Source: Macrostomum hystrix
Lineage: Eukaryota > Animalia > Platyhelminthes
NCBI GenBank assembly: GCA_950097015.1
Contig: CATNEN010000001.1
Coordinates: forward strand, 6,944,001 to 7,008,000
DNA length: 64,000 nt
Reading direction: 5' to 3'
Position 1 is the stretch's first letter. Each line of letters begins with the position of its first letter. Position numbers and translations under genes: made by a program. The notes below the pieces were generated by a model that saw nothing but the letters and a program-made list of their open reading frames with translations, had not been told where the DNA came from and searched no databases. Below are positions 2,517 to 50,200 of the stretch, one piece after another.

Positions 2517-4229
<1,713 letters not shown>

Positions 4230-7950: not shown

Positions 7951-9051
7951 TTAACAACTGGTGGCGAGTTCGGCCCAGAGAGAATTCAGGCACACATTGT
8001 CGGGCAGCTCGCCGACGACAAACAGGCAGAGGGTGATGCGCAGTACCAGCTTGCGTCCGTAGCAGTCCAAGAACGCTGGCAGTCGGTTGGGTTGGAAATA
8101 TTTTCTGCGCACACTTCCTGACCTGCGCTTTTTATAGCTGTCCAGAAGCTCCCACGCTTTGCAGTCTTTCCAGTCGGGGAAGAGGATGAAGAACCAGAAT
8201 TGTCCCGGCTCAGTGTCCTCCAGCAGTTCGACTACCCGCTTGACCGTGGCCTCGAGCACTGGCTCCGAGTGGGGCGGGTTCAGCAACCAACCACCCGGGT
8301 GCGCCTTCAAGTCGACTTTGAAGAAGCTGCCCAGACTGCCGTAGACGGCGTCCGTGTCTGGAAACAGACTGCAGAACTTCGAGTCCGGCCTGTCGCGCAT
8401 GCGCAAGTTAAGCGGCGACGAGAAGCCCTCGTACCTGACGCCGCCGAAGTTGTACAGCGCGTCAAACACAGCGGGGCCAGGACTAGACTCGCAGCCGGCA
8501 AAGTCGTTCAGATTGTGGTAGCGCAGGCAAACTAGCGCAGCGCTCAGCTCGCCGCACATTTGCACCAGTCTCGTGACTTGTTTGGAATGTGGCGTTTGGA
8601 ACTTGCCCACAATGAGCCGGCAGTGGCCTTTTTTCTCTGTGTAGATTACCTGACGCTTGTTCGCCAAAGAATTCTCCAAAATTTGGCTTTCTTGCAGTTG
8701 AAGAAACTGACTGATCTTCTCCTGCAGAGATTCAGCAAACTCTGCAGCTTCATCGTCGGTCATTTCAGGAAAGCTGTACCGGTAATAGTTCACGAATTCT
8801 GTCTTGCTTCTGTCGCCTAGAGCACGCGGCATTAGTGGGTATTGGTCGTCAAGTTGTTCCGGGTCCATGACCTGGATTGTCACAAGCCATCTCGCAAACT
8901 GGCTCTTCGCTTTGTTCCACGGATTTCTATGCGGCGCCGGCCGAAACGCTGACGTCCTCTGCTTGAGCCATTTTTTTAGCTCTTCGAATGCCTCGAACTG
9001 GCTGTACTCGCGCTGAAGCTTGGCTTGCACAATGTCCTCTTCTGATGCCAT
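7951..9051 (-). CDS. PCIF1/CAPAM-like cap-specific adenosine N6-methyltransferase homolog, 366 aa, intronless, no WW domain
   Basis: Motifs SQFARWL...YPLMP, LRYH, VFDAL...VRYEGFSSPLN, FCSLFPDTDAVYGSLGSFF, LNPPHSEPVL and FFILFPDWK parallel the PCIF1 motifs ESFNRW, ECFASPLN, YCSAFPDTDGYFGSRG, NPPF and FIVFIPEW (recalled from memory). Confidence 0.85.
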   Translation of the reverse strand: MASEEDIVQAKLQREYSQFEAFEELKKWLKQRTSAFRPAPHRNPWNKAKSQFARWLVTIQVMDPEQLDDQYPLMPRALGDRSKTEFVNYYRYSFPEMTDDEAAEFAESLQEKISQFLQLQESQILENSLANKRQVIYTEKKGHCRLIVGKFQTPHSKQVTRLVQMCGELSAALVCLRYHNLNDFAGCESSPGPAVFDALYNFGGVRYEGFSSPLNLRMRDRPDSKFCSLFPDTDAVYGSLGSFFKVDLKAHPGGWLLNPPHSEPVLEATVKRVVELLEDTEPGQFWFFILFPDWKDCKAWELLDSYKKRRSGSVRRKYFQPNRLPAFLDCYGRKLVLRITLCLFVVGELPDNVCLNSLWAELATSC

Positions 9052-12607: not shown

Positions 12608-13564
12608 ATGGGTGGTGTCACTCTGCTGCTGTCTGGAGACTTTAGACAGACGCTGCCTGTGATTCCGCGTGGCACTCCTGCTGATGAGATTAATGCTTGC
12701 CTAAAATCATCTCACCTGTGGCCATCGGTTGTGAAGTTGCACCTACGAACAAACATGAGAGCTACAATTCAAGGAGACGAAACAGCTCATGAGTTCTCTG
12801 CCAATCTATTGCGAATCGGCAATGGTCTGCTGGAGATTAGCACCGAGGATGGGCAGTCATCGATCGCTACAATCGGAACCATTGTGCAGTCAGTGCAGGA
12901 GCTCAAGGCAAAAGTTTACCCGAACCTGATGGTTCGATATGCTGACGTTGACTGGCTGTCAGAGAGGGCAATTCTGTGTCCTAGAAATGATGCCGCCAAC
13001 GAAATTAACTACCAACTGCTTCAGGAGTTGCCAGGTGCAGTTTTCACCTACAAGTCAATTGATACAACGTTGACTGATGACACCGCTGTGGAGTATCCTG
13101 TTGAGTTTCTGAACTCTCTAGATCCTCCTGGAACTCCATCGCACAACTTGCAGCTGAAAGTTGGGGCACCAATTATGCTCCTCCGCAACCTGAATGCGCC
13201 AAGGCTGTGTAACGGCACCCGACTGATAGTCAGGCGGCTCTTCCCACACGTGATTGAGGCCACGATAATGACTGGATCTGGCAGAGGAGAGTCTGTGTTC
13301 ATTCCCCGGATTCCAATTATCCCCACGGACCTGCCATTTCAGTTCAAGCGACTGCAGTTCCCTGTGAGAGTGTGCTTTGCGATGACTATTAACAAGGCTC
13401 AGGGACAGTCGCTGAAGGTGGCTGGCATCAACCTGGAGACTCCTTGCTTCTCGCATGGGCAGCTTTATGTCGCCTGCTCCCGTGTTGGAACTCCAGCTGG
13501 CCTATTCATTTTCGCACCAAGGGGAAGAACGAAGAATGTGGTGTATCCCCAGGCCTTGAGTTGA
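12608..13564 (+). pseudogene. Helitron PIF1-family helicase C-terminal ORF, lacking Walker A/B
   Basis: GDFRQTLPV, LKVGAPIMLLRNL...LCNGTRL, RLQFPVRVCFAMTINKAQGQSL, FSHGQLYVACSRV. Confidence 0.88.
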
Positions 13565-13956: not shown

Positions 13957-14839
13957 ACTGTATAGAGGAGTGGCTAAGAGACATGTTTCTAAAGAAGTAA
14001 TCAAGAGGGGGCTGTTTGGACAAACTTTTCACTTATTTTTTACTTAAAACGCCCTTAAACAAACTCTTCACTTTTCATTAATGCAGTAAATAAATAAATG
14101 GTGACCTTCACTATAAAGTTAATACAGAGACGTGAATTGCTTACTGCTTTGCTTTAAATTTCTGCCCCAAAAACAACGGGCAAAAAAAGCTAGTATCTAT
14201 ATATATAAAAGTGAAAACTCTGTCTGTCTGTCTGTCTGTCTGTGTGCAACCTTTTGTCTTTATAGACGCCGAAACCGCTCAACCAAATCGCACCAAACTT
14301 TGCACATACCTAAAACCACCTACGCTGAGTGCAATAGGCTACTCAAATTCCCGAAAAATCATTTCCTTCCTGCTCAAAAGTGCAAAAAACTGCTCAAAAA
14401 TCGTCAAAAAATCACTCAATTTGACATATCGTCGCCCCACTTTGTCAGATTTTCTCCAAATTTGATCCACTTACACTTTACATGTTTTCCAACAATGCTG
14501 TCAATTTTGAACATCTCTACTCAATCCAGAGCAAAGCTGCATCATCTCAAAGTGAGTCACTTTTTGTTTTCCGAGGACAGCCACCCCAACTCCCCTCCGC
14601 CACTCTGCGGGCCAAATTTTATTACAGCCACCCCCTCCCTTCCCCGGGCGCCGAAGCCCCAGACTGTACATTGTATTTCAAGCCGTGAATGTACACAGCC
14701 CAAACCCCTAGATTGTCTACTGGCCCCCAAGCAGCACTGAGACTGAGTGCGGTGAGTGCGGTGGCGTCCCAGTGCGCAGGGCGATATTTCTCTCCAGCCA
14801 GCCTGGGATAGAAGAAAGAGAGAGGCTGGCGATCAACTG

Positions 14840-15796
14840 ATGGGTGGTGTCACTCTGCTGCTGTCTGGAGACTTTAGACAGACGCTGCCTGTGATTCCGC
14901 GTGGCACTCCTGCTGATGAGATTAATGCTTGCCTAAAATCATCTCACCTGTGGCCATCGGTTGTGAAGTTGCACCTACGAACAAACATGAGAGCTACAAT
15001 TCAAGGAGACGAAACAGCTCATGAGTTCTCTGCCAATCTATTGCGAATCGGCAATGGTCTGCTGGAGATTAGCACCGAGGATGGGCAGTCATCGATCGCT
15101 ACAATCGGAACCATTGTGCAGTCAGTGCAGGAGCTCAAGGCAAAAGTTTACCCGAACCTGATGGTTCGATATGCTGACGTTGACTGGCTGTCAGAGAGGG
15201 CAATTCTGTGTCCTAGAAATGATGCCGCCAACGAAATTAACTACCAACTGCTTCAGGAGTTGCCAGGTGCAGTTTTCACCTACAAGTCAATTGATACAAC
15301 GTTGACTGATGACACCGCTGTGGAGTATCCTGTTGAGTTTCTGAACTCTCTAGATCCTCCTGGAACTCCATCGCACAACTTGCAGCTGAAAGTTGGGGCA
15401 CCAATTATGCTCCTCCGCAACCTGAATGCGCCAAGGCTGTGTAACGGCACCAGACTGATAGTCAGGCGGCTCTTCCCACACGTGATTGAGGCCACGATAA
15501 TGACTGGATCTGGCAGAGGAGAGTCTGTGTTCGTTCCCCGGATTCCAATTATCCCCACGGACCTGCCATTTCAGTTCAAGCGACTGCAGTTCCCTGTGAG
15601 AGTGTGCTTTGCGATGACTATTAACAAGGCTCAGGGACAGTCGCTGAAGGTAGCTGGCATCAACCTGGAGACTCCTTGCTTCTCGCATGGGCAGCTTTAT
15701 GTCGCCTGCTCCCGTGTTGGAACTCCAGCTGGCCTATTCATTTTCGCACCAAGGGGAAGAACGAAGAATGTGGTGTATCCCCAGGCCTTGAGGTGA
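14840..15796 (+). pseudogene. Helitron PIF1-family helicase C-terminal ORF, second copy
   Basis: Almost identical to 12608-13564. Confidence 0.88.
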
Positions 15797-18185: not shown

Positions 18186-19802
18186 TCTATATATATAAAA
18201 GTGAAAACTCTGTCTGTCTGTGTGTGTGTGTGTGTGTGTGCAACCTTTTGTCTTTATAGACGCCGAAACCGCTCAACCAAATCGCACCAAACTTTGCACA
18301 TACCTAAAACCACCTACGCTGAGTGCAATAGGCTACTCAAATTCCCGAAAAATAAAAAAAACTAACCCCTAGCCCAAAACTAGCCCAAACCCCTAGACTG
18401 TCTACTGGCCCCCAAGCAGCACTGAGACTGAGTGCGGTGAGTGCGGTGGCGTCCCAGTGCGCAGGGCTCTCCGGTCGATATTTCTCTCCAGCCAGCCTGG
18501 GATAGAAGAAAGAGAGAGGCTGGTGTTGACTGGCTGTCAGACAATTCTGTGTCCTAGAAATGATGCCGCCAACGAAATTAACTACCAACTGCTTCAGGAG
18601 TTGCCAGGTGCAGTTTTCACCTACAAGTCAATTGATACAACGTTGACTGATGACACCGCTGTGGAGTATCCTGTTGAGTTTCTGAACTCTCTAGATCCTC
18701 CTGGAACTCCATCGCACAACTTGCAGCTGAAAGTTGGGGCACCAATTATGCTCCTCCGCAACCTGAATGCGCCAAGGCTGTGTAACGGCACCAGACTGAT
18801 AGTCAGGCGGCTCTTCCCACACGTGATTGAGGCCACGATAATGACTGGATCTGGCAGAGGAGAGTCAGTTCGTTTCAATTCGGATTCCAATTATCCCCAC
18901 GGACCTGCCATTTCAGTTCAAGCGACTGCAGTTCCCTGTGAGAGTGTGCTTTGCGATGACTATTAACAAGGCTCAGGGACAGTCGCTGAAGGTGGCTGGC
19001 ATCAACCTGGAGACTCCTTGCTTCTCGCATGGGCAGCTTTATGTCGCCTGCTCCCGTGTTGGAACTCCAGCTGGCCTATTCATTTTCGCACCAAGGGGAA
19101 GAACGAAGAATGTGGTGTATCCCCAGGCCTTGAGGTGACTCGCAAGCAATTAATAGAAAAGTAGTCACGAATTGACCTTGACCTGTCTAACTCTGAACTC
19201 TGAAACAGTTTAATTTTGTTTCTTTGACATTGTTATTGTTATGCCATGGCTATTTTCCTTATGTATACGCGTGTACATTCATACTGTATACAGAGGCAGA
19301 TTTAGGGGGGGTGGCGGGGGGGCAGTCGCCCCCCTAAATTTTAATCATGGGAATAAGATGCCCCCACCAGGGGCGCCAGTCGCAGCACTGGCGCCCCTTT
19401 TCGGCCGCTGGCGCCCCTTTTTCAGCCGCTGGCTCCCGTTTTTCAGCCGCTGGCGCCCTTTCTTGGCTCCTGGCGCCCTTTTTCGGCCGCTGGCACCCCC
19501 TCTGTGATTCTCATGGCGCTCCCCTGACAGACCGCCCCAAAACAAAATTCCTGGATCTGCCACTGACTGTATAGAGGAGTGGCTAAGAGACATGTTTCTA
19601 AAGAAGTAATCAAGAGGGGGCTGTTTGGACAAACTTTTCACATATTTTTTACTTAAAACGCCCTTAAACAAACTCTTCACTTTTCATTAATGCAGTAAAT
19701 AAATAAATGGTGACCTTCACTATAAAGTTAATACAGAGACGTGAATTGCTTACTGCTTTGCTTTAAATTTCTGCCCCAAAAACAACGGGCAAAAAAAGCT
19801 AA
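18186..19802 (+). mobile_element. Helitron derivative 5 (shorter helicase fragment, frameshifted)
   Basis: A|TC start; hairpin and CTAA|T end, consistent with an AT target site. Helicase fragments at 18540-19138. Confidence 0.92.
19291..19565. mobile_element. hAT-like MITE nested in Helitron 5 (longest version)
   Basis: Same TIRs and actgtata TSD. Confidence 0.85.
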
Positions 19803-19921: not shown

Positions 19922-20585
19922 GGTTGAGAGGAAAATGTACAGGGTGGGAAGAAGATGTGGAGGGTGAGAGGAAGATGTGCAGGGTGGGAGGAAGATGTGC
20001 AGGGTGGGAGGAAGATGTGCAGGGTGTGAGGAAGATGTGCAGGGTGAGAGGAAAATGTGCAGGGTGTGAGGAAGATGTGCAGGGTGAGAGGAAGATGTGC
20101 AGGGTGTGAGGAAGATGTGTAGGGTGTGAGGAAGATGTGCAGGGTGAGAGGAAGATGTGCAGGGTGAAAGGAAGATGTGCAGGGTGTGAGGAAGATGTGC
20201 AGGGTGAGAGGAAGATGTGCAGGGTGTGAGGAAGATGTGTAGGGTGTGAGGAAGATGTGCAGGGTGTAAGGAAGATGTGCAGGGTGTGAGGAAGATGTGC
20301 AGGGTGAGAGGAAGATGTGCAGGGTGTGAGGAAGATGTGTAGGGTGTGAGGAAGATGTGCAGGGTGAGAGGAAGATGTGCAGGGTGAGAGGAAGATGTGC
20401 AGGGTGTGAGGAAGATGTGCCGGGTGAGAGGAAGATATGCAGGGTGTGAGGAAGATGTGCAGGGTGAGAGGAAGATGTGCAGGGTGTGAGGAAGATGTGC
20501 AGGGTGAGAAGAAGATGTGCAGGGTGAGATCGAGGAAGATGCGCAGCTAGGGTGAGAGGAAAATTTTCAGGGTTAGAGGAATATG
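19922..20585. repeat. 20-bp minisatellite (agggtgtgaggaagatgtgc)n
   Basis: About 30 tandem copies. Confidence 0.97.
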
Positions 20586-20971
20586 TGAATGTTGGGGGTA
20601 AAATGTGCATAGTGAGTAGCTTTTGTAGTCGGATTTTGTATGGTTAAGAGAATTTAGAAGATTTAGATTATGTATTTTTATAGTTTACGCTCGTAGAACT
20701 ACTCGTAGTTTTACAGAAATCTCGGCTACACATTCAATTACTTTGTTGCCTGATAATTTTCAGTGGCACATCTTGGATTCGTTTTAGTTAGCTCAAATGC
20801 TGGATTTGAATTGGCACATCTACAAATGAGTTGGCAATAGAGGCAGGTTCATTGTGCTTTCTAGGACCCCCCTTTCTGATGCTTTAGGCTCACAGTCATT
20901 GTTAAAATTTTAGCAAAAATACAAGACGGATTTGAGATTTGAGATTGCTGGAATCCGGTCAAAAATTTCTG

Positions 20972-20979
20972 TATAAATA
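20972..20979 (+). promoter_or_regulatory. Candidate TATA box of the peptide gene
   Basis: TATAAATA about 125 nt upstream of ATG 21100. Confidence 0.4.
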
Positions 20980-21099
20980 GTTTGAGCCAAAAGCTTGGAA
21001 ATCCTCCAAGAATAACTGAGAAGTCAGTCACCTCACAAAGCTGAGAAAAGCAATAGATTTTCAGCGGGGTCAGGACCAAGCTCATACAACTACTCAACC

Positions 21100-21477
21100 A
21101 TGCGAATCGCACTGCAGATCTGCCTGTCTACTGCCCTGCTGCTTGCAGTGATCTGTCTGCAGACATCGGACGCTGCGCCTAACGAGGACCTGGACCTTCA
21201 AGATGCCATAGAAGCCGTTGAAGAGATGAAGAAGCGAGGCCTGCTGGATGACAATGAGCTTGCCGAGGTGAGAATTCATACGATGCTGGCACTATAGAGC
21301 CCTAATAAATTCAAATGCTTTGGAATTGATTGCCTTGCTCATTCTGAAATAACAAATTTCGAATTTCAGGACGAGCCACAGAAGCTGACAAAGAAGTGGC
21401 GACGCATCCGAAGGTTTGTTCGATACGCCAGACAGGCTTATACGGCCTATAAGTTTTTAGGCCCATTGATTGGCTAA
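21100..21477 (+). CDS. Secreted prepropeptide, 91 aa (exons 21100-21267, 21370-21477); putative amidated cationic antimicrobial peptide precursor
   Basis: Signal peptide MRIALQICLSTALLLAVICLQTSDA, then an acidic propiece. A phase-0 intron GAG|gtgaga...tttcag|GAC leads to DEPQKLTKKWRRIRRFVRYARQAYTAYKFLGPLIG-stop. Confidence 0.8.
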
Positions 21478-22437
21478 ACTCCTGGCGCTTATGGAGTTGC
21501 TATTCAGTTATTAACAATCGAATTGACAATTCGATGCAAACAATGTTTTTACCCAAGTTATTTTTCGGTCAAGCTTAGCAACTAGTGTTTTGTTCTAATT
21601 CTATTTACAATCCATACAGTAGTGTTAAAGAATGGTTAACACCAGCCTAATTAATTTGTCGATCTGTGTTGCCTACATTTCTGACCAATTAAATATAGAA
21701 AAGTGAAAAGTCCACAGCAGCCGTCATGCCTTGTGCAGGTGATAAATATTGTACATCGCGCCTCGTATCTTGAGGCTCAAACCATTTTGTCGTTTTCCGA
21801 GTTCTATACATTTTCTTTACTAAATCTACCCCTATACTATTTCTAGTGTGCGAATTCCAATTAATAAACACAGGTCTGCAAAGTTTAGCTGCAGTAAAGA
21901 CCTCTCGACTAAGTAATGGACCATTTGTATTTCAAGGGTATAAAATGCAGGTTGAATATAAAAACGCGAGTAAAAGAAAACGAGGTATGCATTTGCAGAC
22001 ACAAAATATGTTAACAGTGCGCCTCACAAGGCCTCACACGGCCCACCATCGCACGCACCAGCAGGGAGGGCCGGCTCTGGAAGAAAGAAAAACGAAAACA
22101 AATTATAATAACTTGTGCGGTTAAGCGTCTGCTGCAGACGCTTTTAGTGTCTTTTTTGGTTGTTGTGCTAAGAGTCTACGAAATCGGTTTCCTGACCGCA
22201 GCCTGTATGAAGCTCCATATTATTATTAATCTGTTATATTTGGTGCACTGCAAATTTAGCCACCAAAATTAAAAGTTCCTGGCTAAGACTTAAATAAACC
22301 CACAATCACTCTAATCGCTTAGCCTGTTACATCAGTTGGCTGTTCCCAACTTTTAATAATGCTTTTGAAATCTTAATTATCAGCGAAATCAGTCTCGACA
22401 TGTTACTACAAGTAGTCAATCCAGAAGTATCTCTATA

Positions 22438-22572
22438 ATAATGGCAGAGCGGTCAACGCGTTTGCCTCTCGCACCACGGTCCGAAGTTCGATTCCGCGGC
22501 GAGACCACATTCATTTGGGGTGCAGTCGCCGAGAGAATGCTTGGTGGCTTGTCATGCAACCTACAAGGCACA
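22438..22572 (+). mobile_element. 5' part of tRNA-derived SINE family B
   Basis: A-box tggcagagcgg and B-box gttcgattcc. Matches 48028-48150. Confidence 0.8.
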
Positions 22573-23675
22573 GGCGTCATCAGGATACGACCGCTTTGGT
22601 GATGACGCCAGATGGACTGTCGGACCATTTCAGCACGTCGTCAGGCGTGCTGCAGGGTGACACTCTGGCGCCTTTCCTGTTTGTGCTGGCACTGGACTGG
22701 GTGCTGAGGACCGGCCTGCCAAACTCGGACGACGGCTTCCTGCTGAGAAGGCACACGAGTCGGCGGCACCCGGAGAAGCGGCTTTCCGTTCTCGGCTACG
22801 CGGATGACCTCGCGCTTTTGTCATCGACGGCAGAAGGCGCTCAGCGGCTGCTAGATGGCCTTACGGCGGCAGCATCGCGGGTCGGCCTCATGCTGAACGC
22901 GCGGAAGACGGTCGTCTTCACGGTGCCCTCTGACCTGCCTGCCGAGATCAACTATCGAGACGCTGCTGGAGAAGCAATCAGGCTTACCCGCTGCCAGCAG
23001 TTCTTGTACCTCGGCGGCCTCGTGCCAGACGTTGCCGACGACCTGGTGAGGCGACGAGGACTGGCCTGGGCCGCGCTCCGCTCAGTGCGCCCCATACTCC
23101 AATCTGAGGCCCTGGACGACGGGCTCAACGCTCGGCTGTTTCAGGCAGTCGTTGAGACTGTCTTGCTGTATAACGCCGAGACCTGGACCCTGACGGACGC
23201 TTTGGAGAGGCAGCTGAACGCTGCGCATGCGGCCATGCTGCGTGCGGCGTTCGGGGTCCGCAGCGGCCCAGGCAGTGAGACCACTGCCGCGCTCTACGCT
23301 AGGGCGCGCCTGACGCGGCCTTCTGACCTGCTGCGCGGGCGGCGACTTCGACTGGCTGGCCACGTCATCCGGTCGGAGGCCCGCTGCCCTGAGCCACTAC
23401 ACGACGTGCTGCTGCTCAAGCTGCAGGGACCGCGCAGGCGAGGCCAAGGGCGAACGGCGAGATTTCCTGAACGGCTTCTGAGTGATGCTGGCGCCCCGGA
23501 CCAAGCTAGCGGGTGTGACTTTTTGAGATCGTTGGCCCAGAAACGCGCTCTCTGACTGCTCTCCCCCTCTCTGGCCACTGCGTGGCTGGCGGGAGCAGTT
23601 CTTTGTTGTTGTTGTTGTTGTCGCCGCGGTCACCAGCCGTCGGCTCTGGTTGGTGTGCCTCGCTGAAGAGTAAGA
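22573..23675 (+). mobile_element. 5'-truncated RTE-like non-LTR retrotransposon (RT C-terminal half plus 3' UTR)
   Basis: GVLQGDTLAPFLF, LGYADDLALL, GLMLNARKT, FLYLG, LLYNAETWTL, RRLRLAGHVIR. Frame is open to the stop at 23555. Confidence 0.9.
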
Positions 23676-24179: not shown

Positions 24180-24710
24180 TGTGTTAGACATGTGTTGTTA
24201 GACATGTGTTGTTAGACAGTCTAACGCGTGTTGGTGTTAGACAGTCTAAGGTGTGTTGGTGTTAGACAGCCTAAGGTGAGTTGGTGTTAGACAGCCTAAG
24301 GTGTGTTGGTGTTAGACAGCCTAAGGTGTGTTGACCAGTGTTAGACAGTCTAAGGTGTGTTGGTGTTAGACAGTCTAAGGTGTGTTGGTGTTAGACAGTC
24401 CAAGGTGTGTTGGTGTTAGACAGTCTAAGGTGTGTTGGTGTTAGACAGTCTAAGGTGTGTTGGTGTTAGACAGTCTAAGGTGTGTTGGTGTTAGACAGCC
24501 TAAGGTGTGTTGACCAGTGTTAGACAGTCTAAGGTGTGTTGGTGTTAGACAGTCTAAGGTGTGTTGGTGTTAGACAGTCTAAGGTGTGTTGGTGTTAGAC
24601 AGTCTAAGGTGTGTTGGTGTTAGACAGTCTAAGGTGTGTTGGTGTTAGACAGTCTAAGGTGTGTTGGTGTTAGACAGTCTAAGGTGTGTTGGTGTTAGAC
24701 AGTCTAAGGT
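24180..24710. repeat. 25-bp minisatellite (gtgttagacagtctaaggtgtgttg)n
   Basis: About 20 tandem copies. Confidence 0.96.
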
Positions 24711-24933: not shown

Positions 24934-27900
24934 ATGACTCGTCGATTAATCAAATCTTCGGGCGATTTCTATCGCATTCATTCAGACGATGAGATAATAG
25001 AAAATGAAATATTGACAGCCAAGACTGCCGTTGCTAGGGGAAGACGCGGCAACAAGCTGGCTAGATACAGCAGCCAGTTTGGATTGGACGAGCAGGAGAC
25101 TGTACTCAAAGGTGAGACGTTTGAAAATGTGTTTTTTGAAACAATTGATTGATACTTGAAAATAACTGCACTAAAAATTGCAGTGTGCCCGTGCTTTCTG
25201 GTATCTGATCTGCTGGTACAGGGCTGCCTCATTGTGACAGACAGACACGTTTGCTTCTACTCCAGCATGTTCGGCATGAGAAAGACTGTAAGAGCTGCTA
25301 TCTGTGGAGACTCATGCAGGAAAATATTACTCGGATATAGGGAGGGAGAGAAGCAGGGGGAAGAGAGAAGGAAGGAGATTGAGAGAAGAGAAGAGAGAAA
25401 AGGAGAGAAGGAGGGAGAAAAGGAAAGAGAGGAGGAGAGAGAAAAGGAGAGAGAAAAGGAGAGAGAAAAGGAGAGAGAAGAGAAGAGAGAAAAGGGGAGA
25501 AGGAGGGAGAAAAGGAGAGAGAGGAGGAGAGAGAAAAGGAGAGAGAAAAGGAGAGAGAAAAGGAGAGAGAAGAGAAGAGAGAAAAGGAGAGAAGGGGGGA
25601 GAAAAGGAGAGAGAAAAGGAGAGAGAAAAGGAGAGAGAAGAGAAGAGAGAAAAGGAGAGAAGGGGGGAGAAAAGGAGAGAGAGGAGGAGAGAGAAAGGGA
25701 GAGAGAAAAGGAGAGAGAAAAGGAGAGAGAAGAGGGTAGAGAAAATGGGAGAGAAGAGAAGAGAGAAAAGGAGAGAGAAGGAGGGAGAAAAGGAGAGAGA
25801 GGAGGAGAGAGAAAAGGAGAGAGAAGGAGGGAGAAAAGGAGAGAGAGGAGGATAGAGAAAAGGAGAGAGAAAAGGAGAGAGAGGAGGAGAGAGAAAAGGA
25901 GAGAGAAAAGGAGAGAAGGAGGGAGAAAAGGAGAGAGAGGAGGAGAGAGAAAAGGAGAGAGAAAAGGAGAGAAGGAGGGAGAAAAGGAGAGAGAGGAGGA
26001 GAGAGAAAAGGAGAGAGAAGAGAAGAGAGAAAAGGAGAGAAGGAGGGAGAAAAGGAGAGAGAGGAGGAGAGAGAAAAGGAGAGAGAAAAGGAGAGAGAAA
26101 AGGAGGGAGAAAAGGAGAGAGAAAAGGAGAGAAGGAGGGAGAAAAGGAGAGAGAGGAGGAGAGAGAAAAGGAGAGAGAAAAGGAGAGAAGGAGGGAGAAA
26201 ATGAGAGAGAGGAGGAGAGAGAAAAGGAGAGAGAAGAGAAGAGAGAAAAGGAGAGAAGGAGGGAGAAAAGGAGAGAGAGGAGGAGAGAGAAAAGGAGAGA
26301 GAAAAGGAGAGAGAAAAGGAGGGAGAAAAGGAGAGAGAAGAGAAGAGAGAAAAGGAGAGAGAAGAGAAGAGAGAAAAGGAGAGAGAAGAGAAGAGAGAAA
26401 AGGAGAGAAGGAGGGAGAAAAGGAGAGAGAGGAGGAGAGAGAAAAGGAGAGAGAAAAGGAGAGAGAAAAGGAGGGAGAAAAGGAGAGAGAAGAGAAGAGA
26501 GAAAAGGAGAGAGAAAAGGAGAGAGAAAGGGAGAGAGAAAAGGGGAGAGAAAAGGAGAGAGAAAAGGGGAGAGAAAAGAAGAGAGAAAAGAGGAGAGAAA
26601 AGGAGAGAGAAAAGGAGAGAGAAAAGGAGAGAGAAAAGGAGAGAGAAAAGGAGAGAGAAGGAGGGAGAAAAGGAGAGAGAGGAGGAGAGAGAAAAGGAGA
26701 GAGAAGAGAAGAGAGAAAAGGAGAGAGAAGAGAAGAGAGAAAAGGAGAGAAGGAGGGAGAAAAGGAGAGACAGGAGGAGAGAGAAAAGGAGAGAGAAAAG
26801 GAGAGAGAAAAGGAGGGAGAAAAGGAGAGAGAAGAGAAGAGAGAAAAGGAGAGAGAAAAGGAGAGAGAGGAGGAGAGAGAAAGGGAGAGAGAAAAGGGGA
26901 GAGAAAAGGAGAGAGAAAAGGGGAGACAAAAGAAGAGAGAAAAGGGGAGAGAAAAGGGGAGAGAAAAGGGGAGAGAAAAGGGGAGAGAAGAGAAGAGAGA
27001 AAAGGAGAGAGAAGGAGGGAGAAAAGGAGAGAGAGGAGGATAGAGAAAAGGAGAGAGAAAAGGAGAGAGAGGAGGAGAGAGAAAAGGAGAGAGAAAAGGA
27101 GAGAAGGAGGGAGAAAAGGAGAGAGAGGAGGAGAGAGAAAAGGAGAGAGAAAAGGAGAGAAGGAGGGAGAAAAGGAGAGAGAGGAGGAGAGAGAAAAGGA
27201 GAGAGAAGAGAAGAGAGAAAAGGAGAGAAGGAGGGAGAAAAGGAGAGAGAGGAGGAGAGAGAAAAGGAGAGAGAAAAGGAGAGAGAAAAGGAGGGAGAAA
27301 AGGAGAGAGAAGAGAAGAGAGAAAAGGAGAGAGAAGAGAAGAGAGAAAAGGAGAGAGAAGAGAAGAGAGAAAAGGAGAGAAGGAGGGAGAAAAGGAGAGA
27401 GAGGAGGAGAGAGAAAAGGAGAGAGAAAAGGAGAGAGAAAAGGAGGGAGAAAAGGAGAGAGAAGAGAAGAGAGAATAGGAGAGAGAAAAGGAGAGAGAGG
27501 AGGAGAGAGAAAAGGAGAGAGAAAAGGGGAGAGAAAAGGAGAGAGAAAAGGGGAGAGAAAAGAAGAGAGAAAAGGGGAGAGAAAAGGGGAGAGAAGAGAA
27601 GAGAGAAAAGGGGAGAGAAGGAGGGAGAAAAGAAGAGAGAGGAGGAGAGAGAAAAGGAGAGAGAAGAGAAGAGAGAAAAGGGGAGAGAAAAGGAGAGAGA
27701 AGAGGGTAGAGAAAAGGGGAGAGAGGAGAAGAGAGAAAAGGAGAGAAGGAGGGAGAAAAGGAGAGAGAGGAGGAGAGAGAAAAGGAGAGAGAAGAGAAGA
27801 GAGAAAAGGAGAGAGAAAAGGAGAGAGAAGAGAAGAGAGAAAAGGGGAGAGAAAAGGAGAGAGAAAAGGAGAGAGAAGAGAAGAGAGAAAAGGAGAGAGA

Positions 27901-30900
27901 AAGGAGAGAGAAGAGAAGAGAGAAAAGGGGAGAAGGAGGGAGAAAAGGAGAGAGAGGAGGAGAGAGAAAAGGAGAGAGAAAAGGAGAGAGAAAAGGAGAG
28001 AGAAGAGAAGAGCGAAAAGGAGAGAGAAGGAGGGAGAAAAGGAGAGAGAGGAGGAGAGAGAAAAGGACAGCGAAGAGGGTAGAGAAAAGGGGAGAGAGGA
28101 GAAGAGAGAAAAGGAGAGAAGGAGGGAGAAAAGGAGAGAGAGGAGGAGAGAGAAAAGGAGAGAGAAGAGAAGAGAGAAAAGGAGAGAGAAAAGGAGAGAG
28201 AAAAGGAGAGAGAAAAGGAGAGAGAAGAGAAGAGAGAAAAGGGGAGAAGGAGGGAGAAAAGGAGAGAGAGAAGGAGAGAGAAAAGGAGAGAGAAAAGGAG
28301 AGAGAAAAGGAGAGAGAAAAGGAGAGAGAAGAGAAGAGAGAAAAGGGGAGAAGGAGGGAGAAAAGGAGAGAGAGGAGGAGAGAGAAAAAGAGAGAAAAGG
28401 GGAGAAAAAAGGAGAGAGAAAAGGGGAGAGAAAAGAAGAGAGAAAAGGGGAGAGAAAAGGAGAGAGAAAAGGGGAGAGAAAAGGGGAGAGAAAAGGAGAG
28501 AGAAGAGGGTAGAGAAAAGGGGAGAGAGGAGAAGAGAGAAAAGGAGAGAAGGAGGGAGAAAAGGAGAGAGAGGAGGAGAGAGAAAAGGAGAGAGAAGAGA
28601 AGAGAGAAAAGGAGAGAGAAAAGGAGAGAGAAGAGAAGAGAGAAAAGGGGAGAGAAAAGGAGAGAGAAAAGGAGAGAGAAGAGAAGAGAGAAAAGGAGAG
28701 AGAAAGGAGAGAGAAAAGGAGAGAGAAAAGGAGAGAGAAAGGAGAGAGAAAAGGAGAGAGAAGAGAAGAGAGAAAAGGGGAGAAGGAGGGAGAAAAGGAG
28801 AGAGAGGAGGAGAAAGAAAAGGAGAGAGAAAAGGAGAGAGAAAAGGAGAGAGAAGAGAAGAGCGAAAAGGAGAGAGAAGGAGGGAGAAAAGGAGAGAGAG
28901 GAGGAGAGAGAAAAGGAGAGAGAAAAGGGGAGAGAAAAGGAGAGAGAAAAGGGGAGAGAAAAGAAGAGAGAAAAGGGGAGAGAAAAGGAGAGAGAAAAGG
29001 GGAGAGAAAAGGGGAGAGAAAAGGAGAGAGAGGAGAAGAGAGAAAAGGAGAGAGAAGGAGGGAGAAAAGGAGACAGAGGAGGAGAGAGAAAAGGAGAGAG
29101 AAGGAGGGAGAAAAGGAGAGAGAGGAGGAGAGAGAAAAGAAGAGAGAAAGGAGAGAGAAAAGGAGAGAGAAGAGAAGAGAGAAAAGGGGAGAAGGAGGGA
29201 GAAAAGGAGAGAGAGGAGAAGAGAGAAAAGGAGAGAGAAAAGGAGAGAGAAAAGGAGAGAGAAGAGAAGAGAGAAAAGGAGAGAAGGAGGGAGAAAAGGA
29301 GAGAGAGGAGGAGAGAGAAAAGGAGAGAGAAAAGGAGAGAGAAAAGGAGAGAGAGGAGGAGAGAGAAAAGGGGAGAGAAAAGGAGAGAGAAAAGGGGAGA
29401 GAAAAGGAGAGAGAAAAGGGGAGAGAAAAGGAGAGAGAAGAGGGTAGAGAAAAGGGGAGAGAGGAGAAGAGAGAAAAGGAGAGAGAAGAGGGTTGAGAAA
29501 AGGGGAGAGAGGAGAAGAGAGAAAAGGAGAGAGAAGAGGGTAGAGAAAAGGGGAGAAGGAGGGAGAAAAGGAGAGAGAGGAGGAGAGAGAAAAGGAGAGA
29601 GAAAAGGAGAGAGAAAAGGAGAGAGAAGAGAAGAGAGAAAAGGAGAGAGAAGGAGGGAGAAAAGGAGAGAGAGGAGGAGAGAGAAAAGGAGAGAGAAAAG
29701 GGGAGAGAAAAGGAGAGAGAAAAGGGGAGAGAAAAGAAGAGAGAAAAGGGGAGAGAAAAGGAGAGAGAAAAGGGGAGAGAAAAGGGGAGAGAAAAGGAGA
29801 GAGAAGAGGGTAGAGAAAAGGGGAGAGAGGAGAAGAGAGAAAAGGAGAGAAGGAGGGAGAAAAGGAGAGAGAGGAGGAGAGAGAAAAGGAGAGAGAAAGG
29901 AGAGAGAAAAGGAGAGAGAAGAGAAGAGAGAAAAGGGGAGAAGGAGGGAGAAAAGGAGAGAGAGGAGAAGAGAGAAAAGGAGAGAGAAAAGGAGAGAGAA
30001 AAGGAGAGAGAAGAGAAGAGAGAAAAGGAGAGAAGGAGGGAGAAAAGGAGAGAGAGGAGGAGAGAGAAAAGGAGAGAGAAAAGGAGAGAGAAAAGGAGAG
30101 AGAAAAGGAGGGAGAAAAGGAGAGAGAAGAGAAGAGAGAAAAGGAGAGAGAAAAGGAGAGAGAGGAGGAGAGAGAAAAGGAGAGAGAAAAGGGGAGAGAA
30201 AAGGAGAGAGAAAAGGGGAGAGAAAAGAAGAGAGAAAAGGGGAGAGAAAAGGGGAGAGAAGAGAAGAGAGAAAAGGAGAGAGAAGAAGGGAGAAAAGGAG
30301 AGAGAGGAGGAGAGAGAAAAGGAGAGAGAAGAGAAGAGAGAAAAGGGGAGAGAAAAGGGGAGAGAAGAGAAGAGAGAAAAGGAAAGAGAAGGAGGGAGAA
30401 AAGGAGAGAGAGGAGGAGAGAGAAAAGGAGAGAGAAGAGAAGAGAGAAAAGGGGAGAGAAGAGAAGAGAGAGAAGGAGAGAGAAAAGGGGAGAGAAAAGG
30501 AGAGAGAAAAGGAGAGAGAAGAGAAGAGAGAAAAGGAGAGAGAAGGAGGGAGAAAAGGAGAGAGAAAAGGAGAGAGAAAAGGAGAGAGAAGAGAAGAGAG
30601 AAAAGGGGAGAAGGAGGGAGAAAAGGAGAGAGAGGAGGAGAGAGAAAAGGAGAGAGAAAAGGGGGGAGAAAAGGAGAGAGAAAAGGGGAGAAGGAGGGAG
30701 AAAAGGAGAGAGAAAAGGGGAGAAGGAGGGAGAAAAGGAGAGAGAGGAGGAGAGAGAAAAGGAGAGAGAAAAGGGGAGAGAAAAGGAGAGAGAAAAGGGG
30801 AGAGAAAAGGAGAGAGAAAAGGGGAGAGAAAAGGAGAGAGAAAAGGGGAGAGAAAAGGGGAGAGAAAATGAGAGAGAAAAGGAGAGAGAAAAGGAGAGAG

Positions 30901-33900
30901 AAAAGGGGAGAGAAAAGGGGAGAGAAAAGGAGAGAGAAGAGGGTAGAGAAAAGGGGAGAGAGGAGAAGAGAGAAAAGGAGAGAGAAGAGGGTAGAGAAAA
31001 GGGGAGAGAGGAGAAGAGAGAAAAGGAGAGAGAAGAGGGTAGAGAAAAGGGGAGAAGGAGGGAGAAAAGGAGAGAGAGGAGGAGAGAGAAAAGGAGAGAG
31101 AAAAGGGGAGAGAAAAGGAGAGAGAAAAGGGGAGAGAAAAGGAGAGAAGGAGGGAGAAAAGGAGAGAGAGGAGGAGAGAGAAAAGGAGAGAGAAAAGGGG
31201 AGAGAAAAGGAGAGAGAAAAGGAGAGAGAAAAGGAGAGAGAAAAGGGGAGAGAAAAGGAGAGAGAAAAGGAGAGAGAAAAGGGGAGAGAAAAGGGGAGAG
31301 AAAAGGAGAGAGAAGAGGGTAGAGAAAAGGGGAGAGAGGAGAAGAGAGAAAAGGAGAGAGAAGAGGGTAGAGAAAAGGGGAGAGAGGAGAAGAGAGAAAA
31401 GGAGAGAAGGAGGGAGAAAAGGAGAGAGAGGAGGAGAGAGAAAAGGAGAGAGAAAGGAGAGAGAAAAGGAGAGAGAAGAGAAGAGAGAAAAGGGGAGAAG
31501 GAGGGAGAAAAGGAGAGAGAGGAGAAGAGAGAAAAGGAGAGAGAAAAGGAGAGAGAAAAGGAGAGAAGGAGGGAGAAAAGGAGAGAGAGGAGGAGAGAGA
31601 AAAGGAGAGAGAAAAGGAGAGAGAAGAGGAGAGAAGGAGGGAGAAAAGGAGAGAGAAAAGGGGAGAGAAAAGGAGAGAGAAAAGGGGAGAGAAAAGGAGA
31701 GAGAAAAGGGGAGAGAAAAGGAGAGAGAAAAGGGGAGAGAAAAGGAGAGAGAAAAGGGGAGAGAAAAGGGGAGAGAAAAGGAGAGAGAAAAGGAGAGAGA
31801 AGAGGGTAGAGAAAAGGGGAGAGAGGAGAAGAGAGAAAAGGAGAGAAGGAGGGAGAAAAGGAGAGAGAGGAGGAGAGAGAAAAGGAGAGAGAAAAGGGGA
31901 GAGAAAAGGGGAGAGAAAAGGAGAGAGAAAAGGGGAGAGAAAAGGAGAGAGAAAAGGGGAGAGAAAAGGAGAGAGAAAAGGAGAGAGAAAAGGGGAGAGA
32001 AAAGGGGAGAGAAAAGGAGAGAGAAGAGGGTAGAGAAAAGGGGAGAGAGGAGAAGAGAGAAAAGGAGAGAGAAGAGGGTAGAGAAAAGGGGAGAGAGGAG
32101 AAGAGGGAAAAGGAGAGAAGGAGGGAGAAAAGGAGAGAGAGGAGGAGAGAGAAAAGGAGAGAGAAAAGGAGAGAGAAAAGGAGAGAGAAAAGGAGAGAGA
32201 AAAGGAGAGAAGGAGGGAGAAAAGGAGAGAAGGAGGGAGAAAAGGAGAGAGAGGAGGAGAGAGAAAAGGAGAGAGAAAAGGAGAGAGAAGAGGGTAGAGA
32301 AAAGGGGAGAGAAAAGGAGAGAGAAGAGGGTAGAGAAAAGGGGAGAGAAGAGAAGAGAGAAAAGGAGAGAAGGAGGGAGAAAATTAGTGAGAGGAGGAGA
32401 GAGAGGAGGAGAGAGAGGAGGAGAGAAAGGAGGAGGGAGAGAAGGGGGAGGAGGGAGAGAAGGGGGAGGAGGGAGAGGAGGAGGGAGAGAAGGGGGAGGA
32501 GGGAGAGAAGGGGGAGGAGGGAGAGAAGGGGGAGGAGGGAAAGGAGGAGGGAGAGAAGGGGGAGGAGGGAGAGAAGGGGGAGGAGGGAGAGGAGGAGGGA
32601 GAGAAGGCGATTGAGTCAAAGGCAGAAACGATTTTTAATACTTTTCAGAAGAAGATCAGCTTCGAGGAAATTGTGCAGATCAGCAAGGAGAAGGTGTACA
32701 CGCTGTTCCCCACTGGAATCGGTGTGAGAACTCAAACAGAAAAGGTCAGTTTGTTAATCAGGATTCGCGATAAAAATATTATTGATGTCGCATGCATCTC
32801 AGTTCTATATTTAAACTAATCTATGAAACAGAAAAAAACATAAATTAAATGTCCACCAACAACTAAACGATAAGAAGTATTTTTTATTTGCATTTCCGTA
32901 AAATAAAGAAACAAACCTAAGGAAATGCACAGAAATCAAGATGGCAAATTTCTAAATATGGCACTGCTTTTTATCCCTGTCATTGAAATCCCACGTATAA
33001 ATATCTTTTCTCTAAATCCCTCAATCGAAATCCCCTCTTTCGAAATCCCTTCCTTCGAAATCCCCTCCTTCGAAATCCATTCCTACGAAATCCCTTCCTT
33101 CGAAATCCCCTCCTTCGAAATCCCTTCCTTCGAAATCCCCTCCTTCGAAATCCATTCCTTTGAAATCCCTTCCTTCGAAATCCCCTCCTTCGAAATCCTT
33201 TCTTCGAAATCCTTTCTTCGAAATCCCTTCCTTCGAAATTCTTACTTCGAAATCCCCTCCTTCGAAATCCCTTTCTTCAAAATCCCTTTCTCCGAGATCC
33301 ACTCCGATTTAATCCAGTTTTTAACAGCCCGTCTATTAAAATCCCATTTTCGGATTGTCAATGTCAATTAAAATCCTTTTCAATATCCTATTCTTACACA
33401 CACTCGCACACACACGTATTCTGCTGTCATATTAAGCATGTAGCGTAGATTTCGCCTTTGTCAAGACCCGTGACGTGTGCCGAGCTAAAGCTAAAAACAG
33501 ATCCTAAGGAGAAAATATAAAAATAGGTCCCAATCAGTTTGTGTTGCTAGGCGGTTGATACAATTAGAAAATGTTGTAACATACAGCATGAGGCTGACAC
33601 AAGCTAGAACTAAGAAGATTATAGTAGGTTAATTGTAGCACTTTTCAGAAATTTGTATATGCTTACTTCTTTCTACTATCCTGTCTCTTTTATCCCTCTT
33701 ATATCCCATCTCTATCATACCTCTATCCTGACTCTACTATCCATCTATCTTTTTTCGATTATCCATCTATCCTGTCTCTATCGTCAGTCTATCCTGTCTC
33801 TATTATCCCTCTGTCCTGTCTCTCTCGTACCTTTTCCTGCCTCTATTATCCCGAAATCATGAGCCAATCCGAAATCAACATTACCAGGTGACTTTCTCGT

Positions 33901-35712: not shown

Positions 35713-36105
35713 GGGTCAGCATGTGGTCAGTTGTGTACAATGGGGTCAGCATGTGGTCAGTTGTGTACAATGGGATCAGGAACTGGTCAGTTGTGTGCAG
35801 TGGGATCAGGATGTGGTCAGTTGTGTGCAGTGGGATCAGGATGTGGTCAGTTGTGTGCAGTGGGATCAGGATGTGGTCAGTTGTGTACAGTGGGGTCAGG
35901 ATGTGGTCAGTTGTGTGCAGTGGGATCAGGATGTGGTCAGTTGTGTGCAGTGGGATCAGGATGTGGTCAGTTGTGTGCAGTGGGATCAGGATGTGGTCAG
36001 TTGTGTGCAGTGGGATCAGGATGTGGTCAATTATGTGCAGTGGGATCAGGATGTGGTCAGTTGTGTGCAGTGGGATCAGGATGTGGTCAGTTGGGTACAG
36101 TGGTG
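35713..36105. repeat. 30-bp minisatellite (tgggatcaggatgtggtcagttgtgtgcag)n
   Basis: About 13 copies. Confidence 0.96.
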
Positions 36106-36110
36106 ATCAG

Positions 36111-42685: not shown

Positions 42686-43718
42686 GCTCCCAGTCTCTGT
42701 TCACTCCGGGATCACTCTCCCAGTCTCTGTTCACTCCGGGATCACTCTCCCAGTCTCTGTTCACTCCGGGATCACTCTCCCAGTCTCTGTTCACTCCGGG
42801 ATCACTCTCCCAGTCTCTGTTCACTCCGGGATCACTCTCCCAGTCACTGTTCACTCCGGGATCACTCTCCCAGTCACTGTTCACTCCGGGATCACTCTCC
42901 CAGTCACTGTTCACTCCGGGATCACTCTTCCAGTCACTGTTCACTCCGGGATCACTCTCCCAGTCTCTGTTCACTCCGGGATCACTCTCCCAGTCACTGT
43001 TCACTCCGGGATCACTCTCCCAGTCACTGTTCACTCCGGGATCACTCTTCCAGTCACTGTTCACTCCGGGATCACTCTTCCAGTCACTGTTCACTCTGGG
43101 ATCACTCTCCCAGTCTCTGTTCACTCCTGGATCACTCTTCCAGTCACTGTTCACTCCGGGATCACTCTTCCAGTCTCTGTTCACTCCGGGATCACTCTCC
43201 CAGTCTCTGTTCACTCCGGGATCACTCTCCCAGTCACTGTTCACTCCGGGATCACTCTCCCAGTCACTGTTCACTCCGGGATCACTCTCCCAGTCTCTGT
43301 TCACTCCTGGATCACTCTTCCAGTCACTGTTCACTCCGGGATCACTCTCCCAGTCTCTGTTCACTCCTGGATCACTCTTCCAGTCACTGTTCACTCCGGG
43401 ATCACTCTCCCAGTCTCTGTTCACTCCGGGATCACTCTCCCAGTCTGTTCACTCCGTGATCACTCTTCCAGTCACTGTTCACTCCGGGATCACTCTCTCA
43501 GTCTCTGTTCACTCCTGGATCACTCTCCCAGTCTCTGTTCACTCCGGGATCACTCTCCCAGTCTCTGTTCACTCCGGGATCACTCTCCCAGTCTCTGTTC
43601 ACTCCGGGATCACTCTCCCCGTCTCTGTTCACTCCGGGATCATTCTTCCAGTCACTGTTCACTCCTGGATCACTCTCCTAGTCTCTGTTCACTCCTGGAT
43701 CACTCTCCTAGTCACTGT
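42686..43718. repeat. 30-bp minisatellite (cagtctctgttcactccgggatcactctcc)n
   Basis: About 34 copies. Confidence 0.98.
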
Positions 43719-43885
43719 TTTCGAAAACATTTACATTTTTTTCATGAAAACTTAGGTAAATAACTGAATATTTATACAAATGGTTAGTTATTCCGTAAAA
43801 AAGACAACACTTTAAAATGCATGTAAGAAAAGCACAATATATTTATTCTGTACACAAGCATCCTCATAAACTGAACTAAACTTAA

Positions 43886-47212: not shown

Positions 47213-50200
47213 TCACTGACAGCTGAGAGCATTCAGGTCAAGCAGCTGCAGCTCAACGCTGCCATGCTCGCCCTTCGAGTTCCCACCATCCGTGGCCTCG
47301 CAGCCGAAGCCGCCGCAGAATGAGCCGCCTCCACCGCCGGCGAGGTTGCCGCGGAGACCGGCGCCGCCGCCGCTGAAGCCACTGCCAGCTCCTGCGGCTC
47401 CACCCATGGTGGTTGGCGGCTCCGCACCGCCTCCTCCGCCGCCGCCGAAGCCGCCGACACCAGTGCTGCCATCACCGGCGCTGCCACCGACCCAGCCGTC
47501 GGCCCGACTGCCGCCTCGATTTCCATCCGAGCTGCTTCGCCTCGGGTTGACGGCCTTGCCTAGCCAGCCAGCTCCGCAGCCTCCGTGATTTGTATCAGCA
47601 AATGTCTCGTCAGGGTTGTTGAAGCCGGGCTGTCCGTTGGAGCCACCGAAGCCTAATTTGGCGTAAACAGTGCAAACCCGGCTGTCTTTTCCGTTGACTC
47701 CATTTGAACCCGCGGATCCTGCAGATTTTAAAAACAATCTTATCAGGCCAAAAAACGATTTGGTGGATAAGAAAACAGTAGCTGATGAAATGATAAAAAA
47801 ATCAAGTAGAGAAACACAAGCTGCACTGTCCTATCACCATAGACTGGTTTCTTATCCACTTAATTGGCGCTTTTGTCTATGGTCGAGTGTAGTTCTATGG
47901 CAGTGGCTGCTACTGCAGGATATGGCAGATTCTAAACGTGATTGACTTATTCTCGACTTGGCTGACAAAAGCAATAGTGGTCCTTGGCTAAACTGTCCAC
48001 AACTTTTGGCCATAGACTTCAGGGGTCGGTGGCAGAGGGGTTAACGCGTTTGCCTCTCGCACCAAGGTCCCTGAGCTCGATTTCGCGGCGAGGCCACATT
48101 CTTTTGGGGCGCAGCCGCGAAGAGAGAAGGCTTGGGGGCTTTTTATGCAATTTATGCCCTTGAGGGTCAATCTCCAATGAGGCACAGTGAACTATACACT
48201 GCCTGACGATGAGAAAGTCAGGGCAGATGTACACACCGGTATGAGCGTGTGCCTGCGTACACCATCAGAGTGCGTGTGTGCTCAGGAGTCAGCAAAATTT
48301 ACGGAATTTTTTTGGCCATAGACTTTTTAAGCGTGCACCGATGATGTATGGCTGCACGCTCAGAAAAAAAATTGTTTCACGCTCTACAATGTGTCCAAAA
48401 GAGAATTGTTTTATCGTGAACCAATTATATTACTAGAAAATGATTTTTAGGACCTACAATGCTTGGGTGTTAGCTGTGTAGCACACACTGTGTTAGCTTG
48501 GAGCACTTCAATTTAATAATGGACAGTGGCAGTAAGGTCGAGTACTCGTACAACTGGGCAGCCATGCTTGCCAGGAAACAGTATCTTATTGATCAACACT
48601 ATTTTATTGCTGCAAGCTAGATAAAAGCAGAAATTGGGAGAAATCCCTGGTCAGAGGGAATGGATCTGACTCCCTACCATCGACGCAAAGTGAAGCTCCT
48701 CCGCCACCGCCAGCCGCCATCAGCAGCCCGCTGCCAGCTGCTCGATACACGAAGCTGCCTCCGCCACCGCCAGCTCCGGCCTTGTCGCTGCTGCTAGCAG
48801 AGCCTGCCTGACCGACCACAATGGTCAGCTGGAGACCGGCTGTCAGGTTGAACCTGCCAGCAACCAGAGCTCCTCTGCCTCCGAAATTATTGTTAAAAAT
48901 GTTGTCGCCGCCCTTGGCACCGGAGACCTCGATACGGTAGCAGCCGGTCATGTTGATCAGCACCGACTGAGTGACACCCAGCCTTCCGGTCGACGTATCT
49001 TTGAGTGTGATGGGCAGGCAGGGAAGGTTGGGAGAGCTCAGAAAAGTGAGCAGAGTTACAAGACTCACTGACGAAGCGACGGTAGCCGATCTGCCTGGCT
49101 TTGAGCAGCTCGCTGAATCCCTCCACCAGCCAGACTGCCGCACCGGCCTCGGCACCCACCAGTCTCCTCACGTGACACTCCGCTGGCCCCGGGACATTCG
49201 ATGCATCCAGCAGCCTGACGGCTTGGCACAGGCCGCTCATCAAATTCCAACTGAACGCTGCGCAGTCACGGAGCAGGCAGAGCAGGGAGCATTCCTGCAA
49301 GGATGAGCTCCCTGACACGGAGGCGACCTCGCTGCACACCGACGAGTGCAGAAGCAGAGGCGCCGGCGACCACTCGAAGCGGCGAGCGACGGACAGCGGG
49401 GCCACCGACTGCGGCACTGACGAAAGAAAGAGTAGAGCAGATCATGTGACACACACACTGTGTGAGCAGCAGATGGTGTGACACACACACTGTGTGAGCA
49501 GCAGATGGTGTGACACACACACTATGTGAGCAGCAGATCATGTGACACACACACTATGTGAGCAGCAGATCATGTGACACACACACTGTGTGAGCAGCAG
49601 ATCATGTGACACACATACTGTGTGAGCAGCAGATCATATGACACACACACTGTGTGAGCAGCAGATCATGTGACACACACACTGTGTGAGCAGCAGATCA
49701 TGTGACACACATACTGTGTGAGCAGCAGATCATGTGACACACACACTGTGTGAGCAGCAGATCATGTGACACACATACTGTGTGAGCAGCAGATCATGTG
49801 ACACACACACTGTGTGAGCAGCAGATCATGTGACACACATACTGTGTGAGCAGCAGATCATGTGACACACATACTGTGTGAGCAGCAGATCACGTGACAC
49901 ACACACTATGTGAGCAGCAGATCATGTGACACACATACTGTGTGAGCAGCAGATCATGTGACACACACACTATGTGAGCAGCAGATCATGTGACACACAT
50001 ACTGTGTGAGCAGCAGATCACGTGACACACATACTGTGTGAGAAGCATATTATGTGACACACACACTATGTGAGCAGCAGATCATGTGACACACATACTG
50101 TGTGAGCAGCAGATCATGTGACACACTGTGTGAGCAGCAGATCATGTGACACACTGTGTGTGCAGAAGATCGTGTGACACACACACTATGTGTGCAGCAG

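Follow-up and report, generated by a model that had tools for sequence, protein, structure and literature searches.

A two-exon gene of Macrostomum hystrix for a predicted cationic, amidated peptide, with a mature-peptide exon remotely related to an unnamed Macrostomum precursor family

Does the stretch between positions 21100 and 21477 of the analysed DNA, a 64,000-nt segment of the Macrostomum hystrix genome (hereafter the window), hold a real gene for a secreted peptide, to what is such a gene related, and what might its product do? An earlier note had proposed a hidden two-exon precursor of a probable amidated, cationic antimicrobial peptide (AMP). The reading that we prefer, and to which we give about an even chance when all its parts are taken together, is that of a real, single-copy, two-exon gene for a secreted prepropeptide, with a second exon anciently related to a large Macrostomum precursor family and with a membrane-active, host-defence-like product.

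The gene anatomy was read directly from the DNA and from the translation of each exon. Exon 1 (21100–21267, 56 codons) opens with an ATG at 21100 and closes at GAG/GTGAGA (21267/21268). Exon 2 (21370–21477, 35 codons plus TAA) starts at TTTCAG/G (21369/21370), and its frame ends in Gly-TAA. Joined by the predicted splicing, they form a frame of 91 codons and a prepropeptide of 91 residues. The two exons, the 102-nt GT-AG intron and the succession of signal, acidic propiece and tail are as they had been described before. The same is true for the remark that the open reading frame list misses the mature part, its sole entry for the locus being an unspliced ORF of 65 aa (21100–21297). The recognized features were:

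20972..20979, + strand: TATA box TATAAATA, read in the sequence, 128 nt upstream of the ATG; putative function
21003..21010, + strand: possible initiator CCTCCAAG, 31 nt past the start of the TATA box
21100..21174, + strand: signal peptide, residues 1–25, predicted cleavage after S-D-A (translation, rule-based)
21175..21267, + strand: 31 residues of the acidic propiece encoded by exon 1, containing a KKR; net charge −8
21268..21369, + strand: predicted intron, 102 nt, GT-AG, phase 0, donor GAG/GTGAGA, acceptor TTTCAG/G, GC 0.35
21370..21396, + strand: end of the propiece, DEPQKLT, and KK processing site (translation); DEP and KK align with DEP...KK of the family
21397..21471, + strand: predicted mature peptide, W66–I90, 25 aa (translation)
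21472..21477, + strand: terminal Gly (amide donor) and TAA stop (translation)
21688..21693, + strand: candidate poly(A) signal ATTAAA, 211 nt past the stop
21863..21868, + strand: second candidate poly(A) signal, AATAAA

The signal peptide, a rule-based call, has a 14-residue hydrophobic core and a small −3/−1 pair. By the same kind of division of the product, the whole propiece comprises 40 residues. The predicted mature peptide carries a net charge of +7 and six aromatic residues, with no D, E or C. For the 27-residue tail, the counts given in the earlier note were correct (nine K/R, no D/E/C, a terminal Gly), and six of its residues are aromatic. Its propiece sequence needed mending, having dropped KLT, the three residues between DEPQ and KKW.

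The surroundings were examined in the whole window. On one side of the gene there is a minisatellite with a 20-nt unit (19928–20526). Upstream we found ORF fragments of the PIF1 helicase / Pif1 2B type at 12608–13564, 14756–15796 and 18457–18966 (+), which by their sequence look like repeated remnants of Helitron-like transposons. Downstream, at a distance of ~1 kb from the gene, an RVT_1 (reverse-transcriptase) ORF at 22515–23555 (+) probably marks a fragment of a retroelement. Positions 25381–32445 hold a 7-kb array that is purine-only on the + strand, with ~600 copies of a GA-rich 12-nt unit and with both GC skew and AT skew at ~1. Dense minisatellites with units of 20–44 nt, containing many long spurious ORFs, were found at 19928–20526, 24210–24710, 35716–36110, 42687–43719, 49436–52121, 55415–56417, 56980–57828, 58421–59404, 59923–60547 and 61914–63166. 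The window also has an intronless, PCIF1-like ORF at 7951–9051 (−; Pfam PCIF1_WW, E 9e-26), the nearest Atlas clusters of which are mostly from Nucleocytoviricota, and a long ORF at 2598–4229 (+) that spans a CAG/CAA (poly-Gln-coding) repeat (3072–3844).

In a window so rich in repeats, whose minisatellites yield many long spurious ORFs, two ORFs and a pair of splice sites might come together by coincidence within non-coding DNA. Several observations speak against this. The exon-1 ORF was the sole ATG ORF of 40–200 aa in the six frames of the 64-kb window to pass a crude signal-peptide filter. The splice sites are canonical and in phase, and the G + C content differs between the exons (0.53) on the one hand and the intron (0.35) and the flanks (0.37) on the other. 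Furthermore, the best two matches of the window to the profile of the Macrostomum family described below are the two exons, in their order. Coincidence is therefore very unlikely.

We looked for relatives exon by exon, the queries being each of the two exons and the open frame 21298–21474. Protein and DNA searches for paralogues in the M. hystrix genome, covering 220,453,370 bases in 42 contigs, gave solely the locus itself, showing that the gene is single copy. Exon 1 had 0 matches at E ≤ 0.001 among 1.84 billion representative proteins, and public protein sets yielded neither a homologous protein nor an orthologue or spliced product for exon 1 and the exon-2 frame. This empty result weighs little, because the M. 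hystrix gene set seems to be missing from those collections. There was no Pfam family and no PDB match for the gene, and the best score of exon 2 in the Atlas, 0.76, is meaningless. Judging by these sequence searches, the gene is lineage-restricted.

The lineage-specific character that had been proposed for the peptide thus holds, given the lack of database matches. The idea of a wholly unrecognised type is weakened, since exon 2 turned out to be a remote relative of a large Macrostomum family. As for the paralogues that the earlier note had suggested looking for, with a conserved prepro region and a variable C-terminus, the own-genome searches left the locus standing alone, and what exists are remote relatives of exon 2, in a family with a conserved signal and variable tails.

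This family has at least 58 loci in the M. hystrix genome by single-sequence search and at least 62 by profile search. Its precursors, ~70–93 aa long, have a nearly invariant signal of the MKWQ type (M-[KR]-W-Q-x-x-L-G-L-L-L-C-A-A-L-A), a DE[PS] motif within an acidic propiece, a dibasic KK that is rarely replaced by AK or SK, and a cationic, hypervariable, Cys-free tail ending in G, GK or GKK. All 29 extracted members were encoded by an intronless single ORF. The family is also present in M. lignano, with 60–79% identity to proteins annotated there as “hypothetical proteins” (BOX15_Mlig001477g4, Mlig030644g1, Mlig025003g1). It is found in flatworms only, is genus-restricted to Macrostomum and carries no name; here we call it the MKWQ-type family.

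According to Irvine et al. 2023 (PMC10414684), some M. lignano members are among the computational “AMP-like peptides” of supplement S5, where 82–91% of the predictors flagged them as AMP-like. The same paper states that the flatworm AMP repertoire was previously undescribed. These members were then removed from its priority list, either for occurring in a single genome or for being ungrouped. The examined portion of S5 contained no orthologue motif of the gene. Our literature search found no paper on Macrostomum AMPs and no measured activity for any MKWQ-type family member.

In most family genes a TATA-like box precedes the ATG by ~98 nt. Some 25 nt further upstream lies CCGGAAAAACGTG, at about −125 to −95 from the ATG (loci L003–L052), and ~30 nt after the box lies CTCCAAGCC. 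By sequence, the three together look like a family-wide promoter. The poly(A) signals of the family are located ~150–260 nt past the stop codons.

Two family copies are truncated. One, at L003:7972–8259 (G000:C1:16879771...), breaks after ...ALADL and continues into unrelated sequence. The other, L047 (G000:C5:1140696...), is truncated at the 5′ end and starts with ...ALEALADLDEP directly after a minisatellite. An intron common to the family was considered and rejected: the apparent “split” copy is the truncated L003:7972–8259, which has no usable donor site. Two further singleton genes, L056 (G000:C2:5579150–5579350, −) and L057 (G000:C33:1544771–1544968, −), are at the detection edge of the family profile. 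They have different signal peptides, and share with the gene an acidic propiece, a basic site and an Arg-rich tail.

The likeness of the gene to the MKWQ-type family was found in exon 2. Of the 1,689 stop-to-stop segments that the window contains, the exon-2 frame matched the family HMM best (E 5e-4, over HMM positions 41–80). Exon 2 scored 16.5–17 bits, a value equalled by 0 of 1000 full shuffles and by 0 of 2000 shuffles in which the acidic block, the KK, the cationic block and the Gly were kept. Shuffling of the mature part alone gave z values of 3.5–5.6 for the similarity to the mature peptides of the closest subfamily. With its closest family member, exon 2 shared 52% identity over the aligned columns. 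The alignment is collinear and runs through DEP, a linker, KKW, an RRIR-type run, A-[RK]-x-A-Y-x-x-Y and the C-terminal Gly, the linker from DEP to KK being 7 residues shorter in the gene than in the family.

The similarity has clear bounds. The genome-wide family profile lists 62 loci, and the locus of the gene is not among them; the single-sequence search misses it too. A profile of the C-terminal half that included exon 2 retrieved no other exon-2-only relatives. Sensitive blastn of the locus against the family loci gave only hits with E > 0.5, hence no similarity at the DNA level, and because of this the split from the family must be old. Taken together, the protein-level comparison suggests an ancient kinship between the mature-peptide exon and the family's C-terminal half.

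Could the likeness of exon 2 instead be convergent, driven by composition and function, with the gene having arisen independently? The profile score amounts to merely 17 bits, and the genome-wide profile search passes over the locus. Cationic Arg/aromatic peptides are also compositionally simple, and in its structure, its promoter and its exon 1 the gene departs from the family. Against this stands a likeness that is collinear and dependent on residue order (DEP ... KKW ... RRIR-type run ... Gly), and that outlasts both the block-composition shuffles and those confined to the mature part. We consider convergence improbable, and proceed with exon 2 as an old family relative.

Exon 1 behaved differently from exon 2. 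It reached 6.4–6.7 bits with the family HMM, a score attained by 136 of 2000 block-preserving shuffles. In the window scan its frame ranked second (E ~1, HMM positions 8–51). We rejected this rank as evidence for homology, as it merely restates the signal and acidic make-up of the exon. The signal starts with MRIALQ and has another hydrophobic core than the MKWQ-type cassette. The promoter differs too: no match to the CCGGAAAAACGTG motif with up to 3 mismatches was found near 20700–21100, and the profile of the family upstream regions, run against the window, gave no match at the promoter of the gene. Because that profile gives no significant match there, the possible initiator CCTCCAAG is recorded as an observation only.

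The gene further differs from the family in needing a 102-nt intron, where the family is intronless, and in being a singleton outside any cluster. It resembles the family in the end of the propiece with DEP and KK, in the Cys-free cationic tail followed by Gly-stop (a 25-mer, +7), and in the order of its parts: signal, acidic propiece, DEP, KK, cationic Arg/aromatic peptide and terminal G(K)(K). With an unlike signal, promoter and exon structure and a like propiece end, KK site and tail, the gene is therefore a remote relative of the family and not a member. As there is no likeness in exon 1, in the promoter or at the DNA level, the detectable kinship is confined to exon 2 and stops at the intron.

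The position of this boundary invites a comparison with the precursors of anuran skin AMPs (brevinin / dermaseptin type), in which an intron also separates the export part from the mature-peptide exon (PMC13128954). These precursors have, like the gene, a signal, an acidic spacer, a dibasic site and a mature peptide that is cationic and, in many cases, amidated. The pattern of conservation is the opposite one: frogs conserve the signal exon and have a hypervariable mature peptide, whereas in the gene the detectable conservation is in the mature-peptide exon. Conservation in the peptide exon and not in the export exon is, as far as the sequence comparison goes, the unusual point of this gene.

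One tentative explanation, which we consider unlikely to be the right one, is an exchange of the export exon, by which an old family mature-peptide cassette was joined via an intron to an unrelated signal/propiece exon and to another promoter. The junction may then fall exactly at the cassette boundary. Alternatively, exon 1 could simply have diverged faster than exon 2. If true, the exchange would turn round the usual AMP pattern, in which the export part is conserved and the peptide varies. It would also be a concrete case of exon shuffling, a process postulated for frog AMP genes and, according to PMC13128954, not yet demonstrated.

An old, diverged family copy could also be a silent relic that is not, or never was, transcribed or spliced, with its frame open by luck. 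The common promoter motif of the family is absent from the gene, the surroundings are rich in transposable elements and minisatellites, the protein databases gave neither product nor orthologue, and truncated family copies do occur elsewhere in the genome. However, the DNA similarity to the family has been wholly lost, and yet the gene retains an intact frame of 91 codons with its signal peptide, KK and Gly, and the two splice sites as well. The joint probability that shuffled exons contain no stop is only ~0.013. The TATA box and the ATTAAA are placed at family-like distances, and the exons are GC-rich compared with the intron and flanks. A silent relic thus appears unlikely. The combination of an old split from the family with the integrity of all gene parts, despite the lost DNA similarity, provides the best case for function, although an indirect one drawn from sequence comparison.

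We therefore return to a working, secreted precursor, and describe the route that its parts predict. If the gene is expressed, the nascent chain would be exported co-translationally and cut by signal peptidase after residue 25. The acidic propiece would neutralise the cationic tail until its release, for which a proprotein convertase would cut after K64–K65, and the terminal Gly91 would be converted into a C-terminal amide. Genes for the enzymes of this route occur in the genome, some with a Cu2_monooxygen domain and others with a proprotein-convertase P-domain. The expected product is a 25-residue, Arg/aromatic-rich, helix-prone peptide with a net charge of +7. Its helical moment of 0.525 was reached by ~3% of shuffles (p about 0.03), and AlphaFold2, run on the single sequence of the mature peptide, returned one helix with a pLDDT of 74 (moderate confidence). 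The layout put forward in the earlier note, with a signal, an anionic propiece, a dibasic site, a cationic and helix-prone C-terminus and a Gly donor, is borne out. By analogy with host-defence peptides, the likeliest action would be the binding and disruption of anionic membranes.

Similar layouts are known from distant systems. Melittin and other precursors of aculeate venoms have a signal, an anionic propiece, a cationic amphipathic peptide and a terminal Gly as amide donor, in the same arrangement as the gene. They are products of insect venom glands, and in melittin a dipeptidyl peptidase takes off the propiece step by step, without cleavage at a KK site. No homology between the gene and melittin-type precursors is known. 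In the arminins of Hydra, an anionic N-terminal part is followed by a cationic, helical C-terminal part, the latter being the active antibacterial peptide (PMC11767717). The gene shares with them the secreted precursor, the order of an anionic and a cationic part and the restriction to a taxon. The arminins belong to another phylum, their activity has been measured, and no sequence relationship to them was detected, the likeness of the gene being one of layout. Searches of the representative proteins, Pfam and the Atlas gave no prepro homology to arminins or to anuran AMPs. An antimicrobial function is plausible by analogy of this layout. A membrane-active host-defence peptide would agree with the modelled properties of the product and with the large number of hypervariable paralogues in the related family.

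A signal, a propiece, a dibasic site and a Gly amide are common to neuropeptides, venom peptides and AMPs alike. The gene could consequently be real and its product secreted, with a role other than antimicrobial: a gland secretion, which could be a prey-immobilising toxin, an adhesive or mucus additive or a peptide of the seminal fluid, or else a peptide that signals through a receptor. In Hydra, NDA-1 is reported as an example of overlap between these categories (PMC5614986), and many secreted, reproduction-related transcripts of Macrostomum evolve fast (PMC10468722). The absence of activity data for the family from our literature search is also compatible with such a role. When compared with amidated neuropeptides, the gene has the Gly donor and the KK site; its peptide is long and highly charged, and the protein sets gave no orthologue. 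Flatworm neuropeptides are short, and an amphipathic helix of 25 residues with a charge of +7 and no acidic residues would be atypical of them. In addition, a set of >60 paralogues with hypervariable cationic tails fits an arms race of defence or offence better than receptor signalling. We regard a non-antimicrobial role as rather doubtful, and continue to favour a host-defence-like peptide.

By itself, the gene is one more candidate peptide. Its wider interest comes from the large, genus-restricted family of AMP-like precursors in Macrostomum, which the literature touches in one supplementary table only (PMC10414684). To this family the gene adds a remote, intron-bearing relative with a different promoter. 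If expressed, it would provide a peptide to be tested beside those of the family, and a handle on how such precursors evolve, by divergence of the whole gene or by the joining of an old peptide exon to a new export exon.
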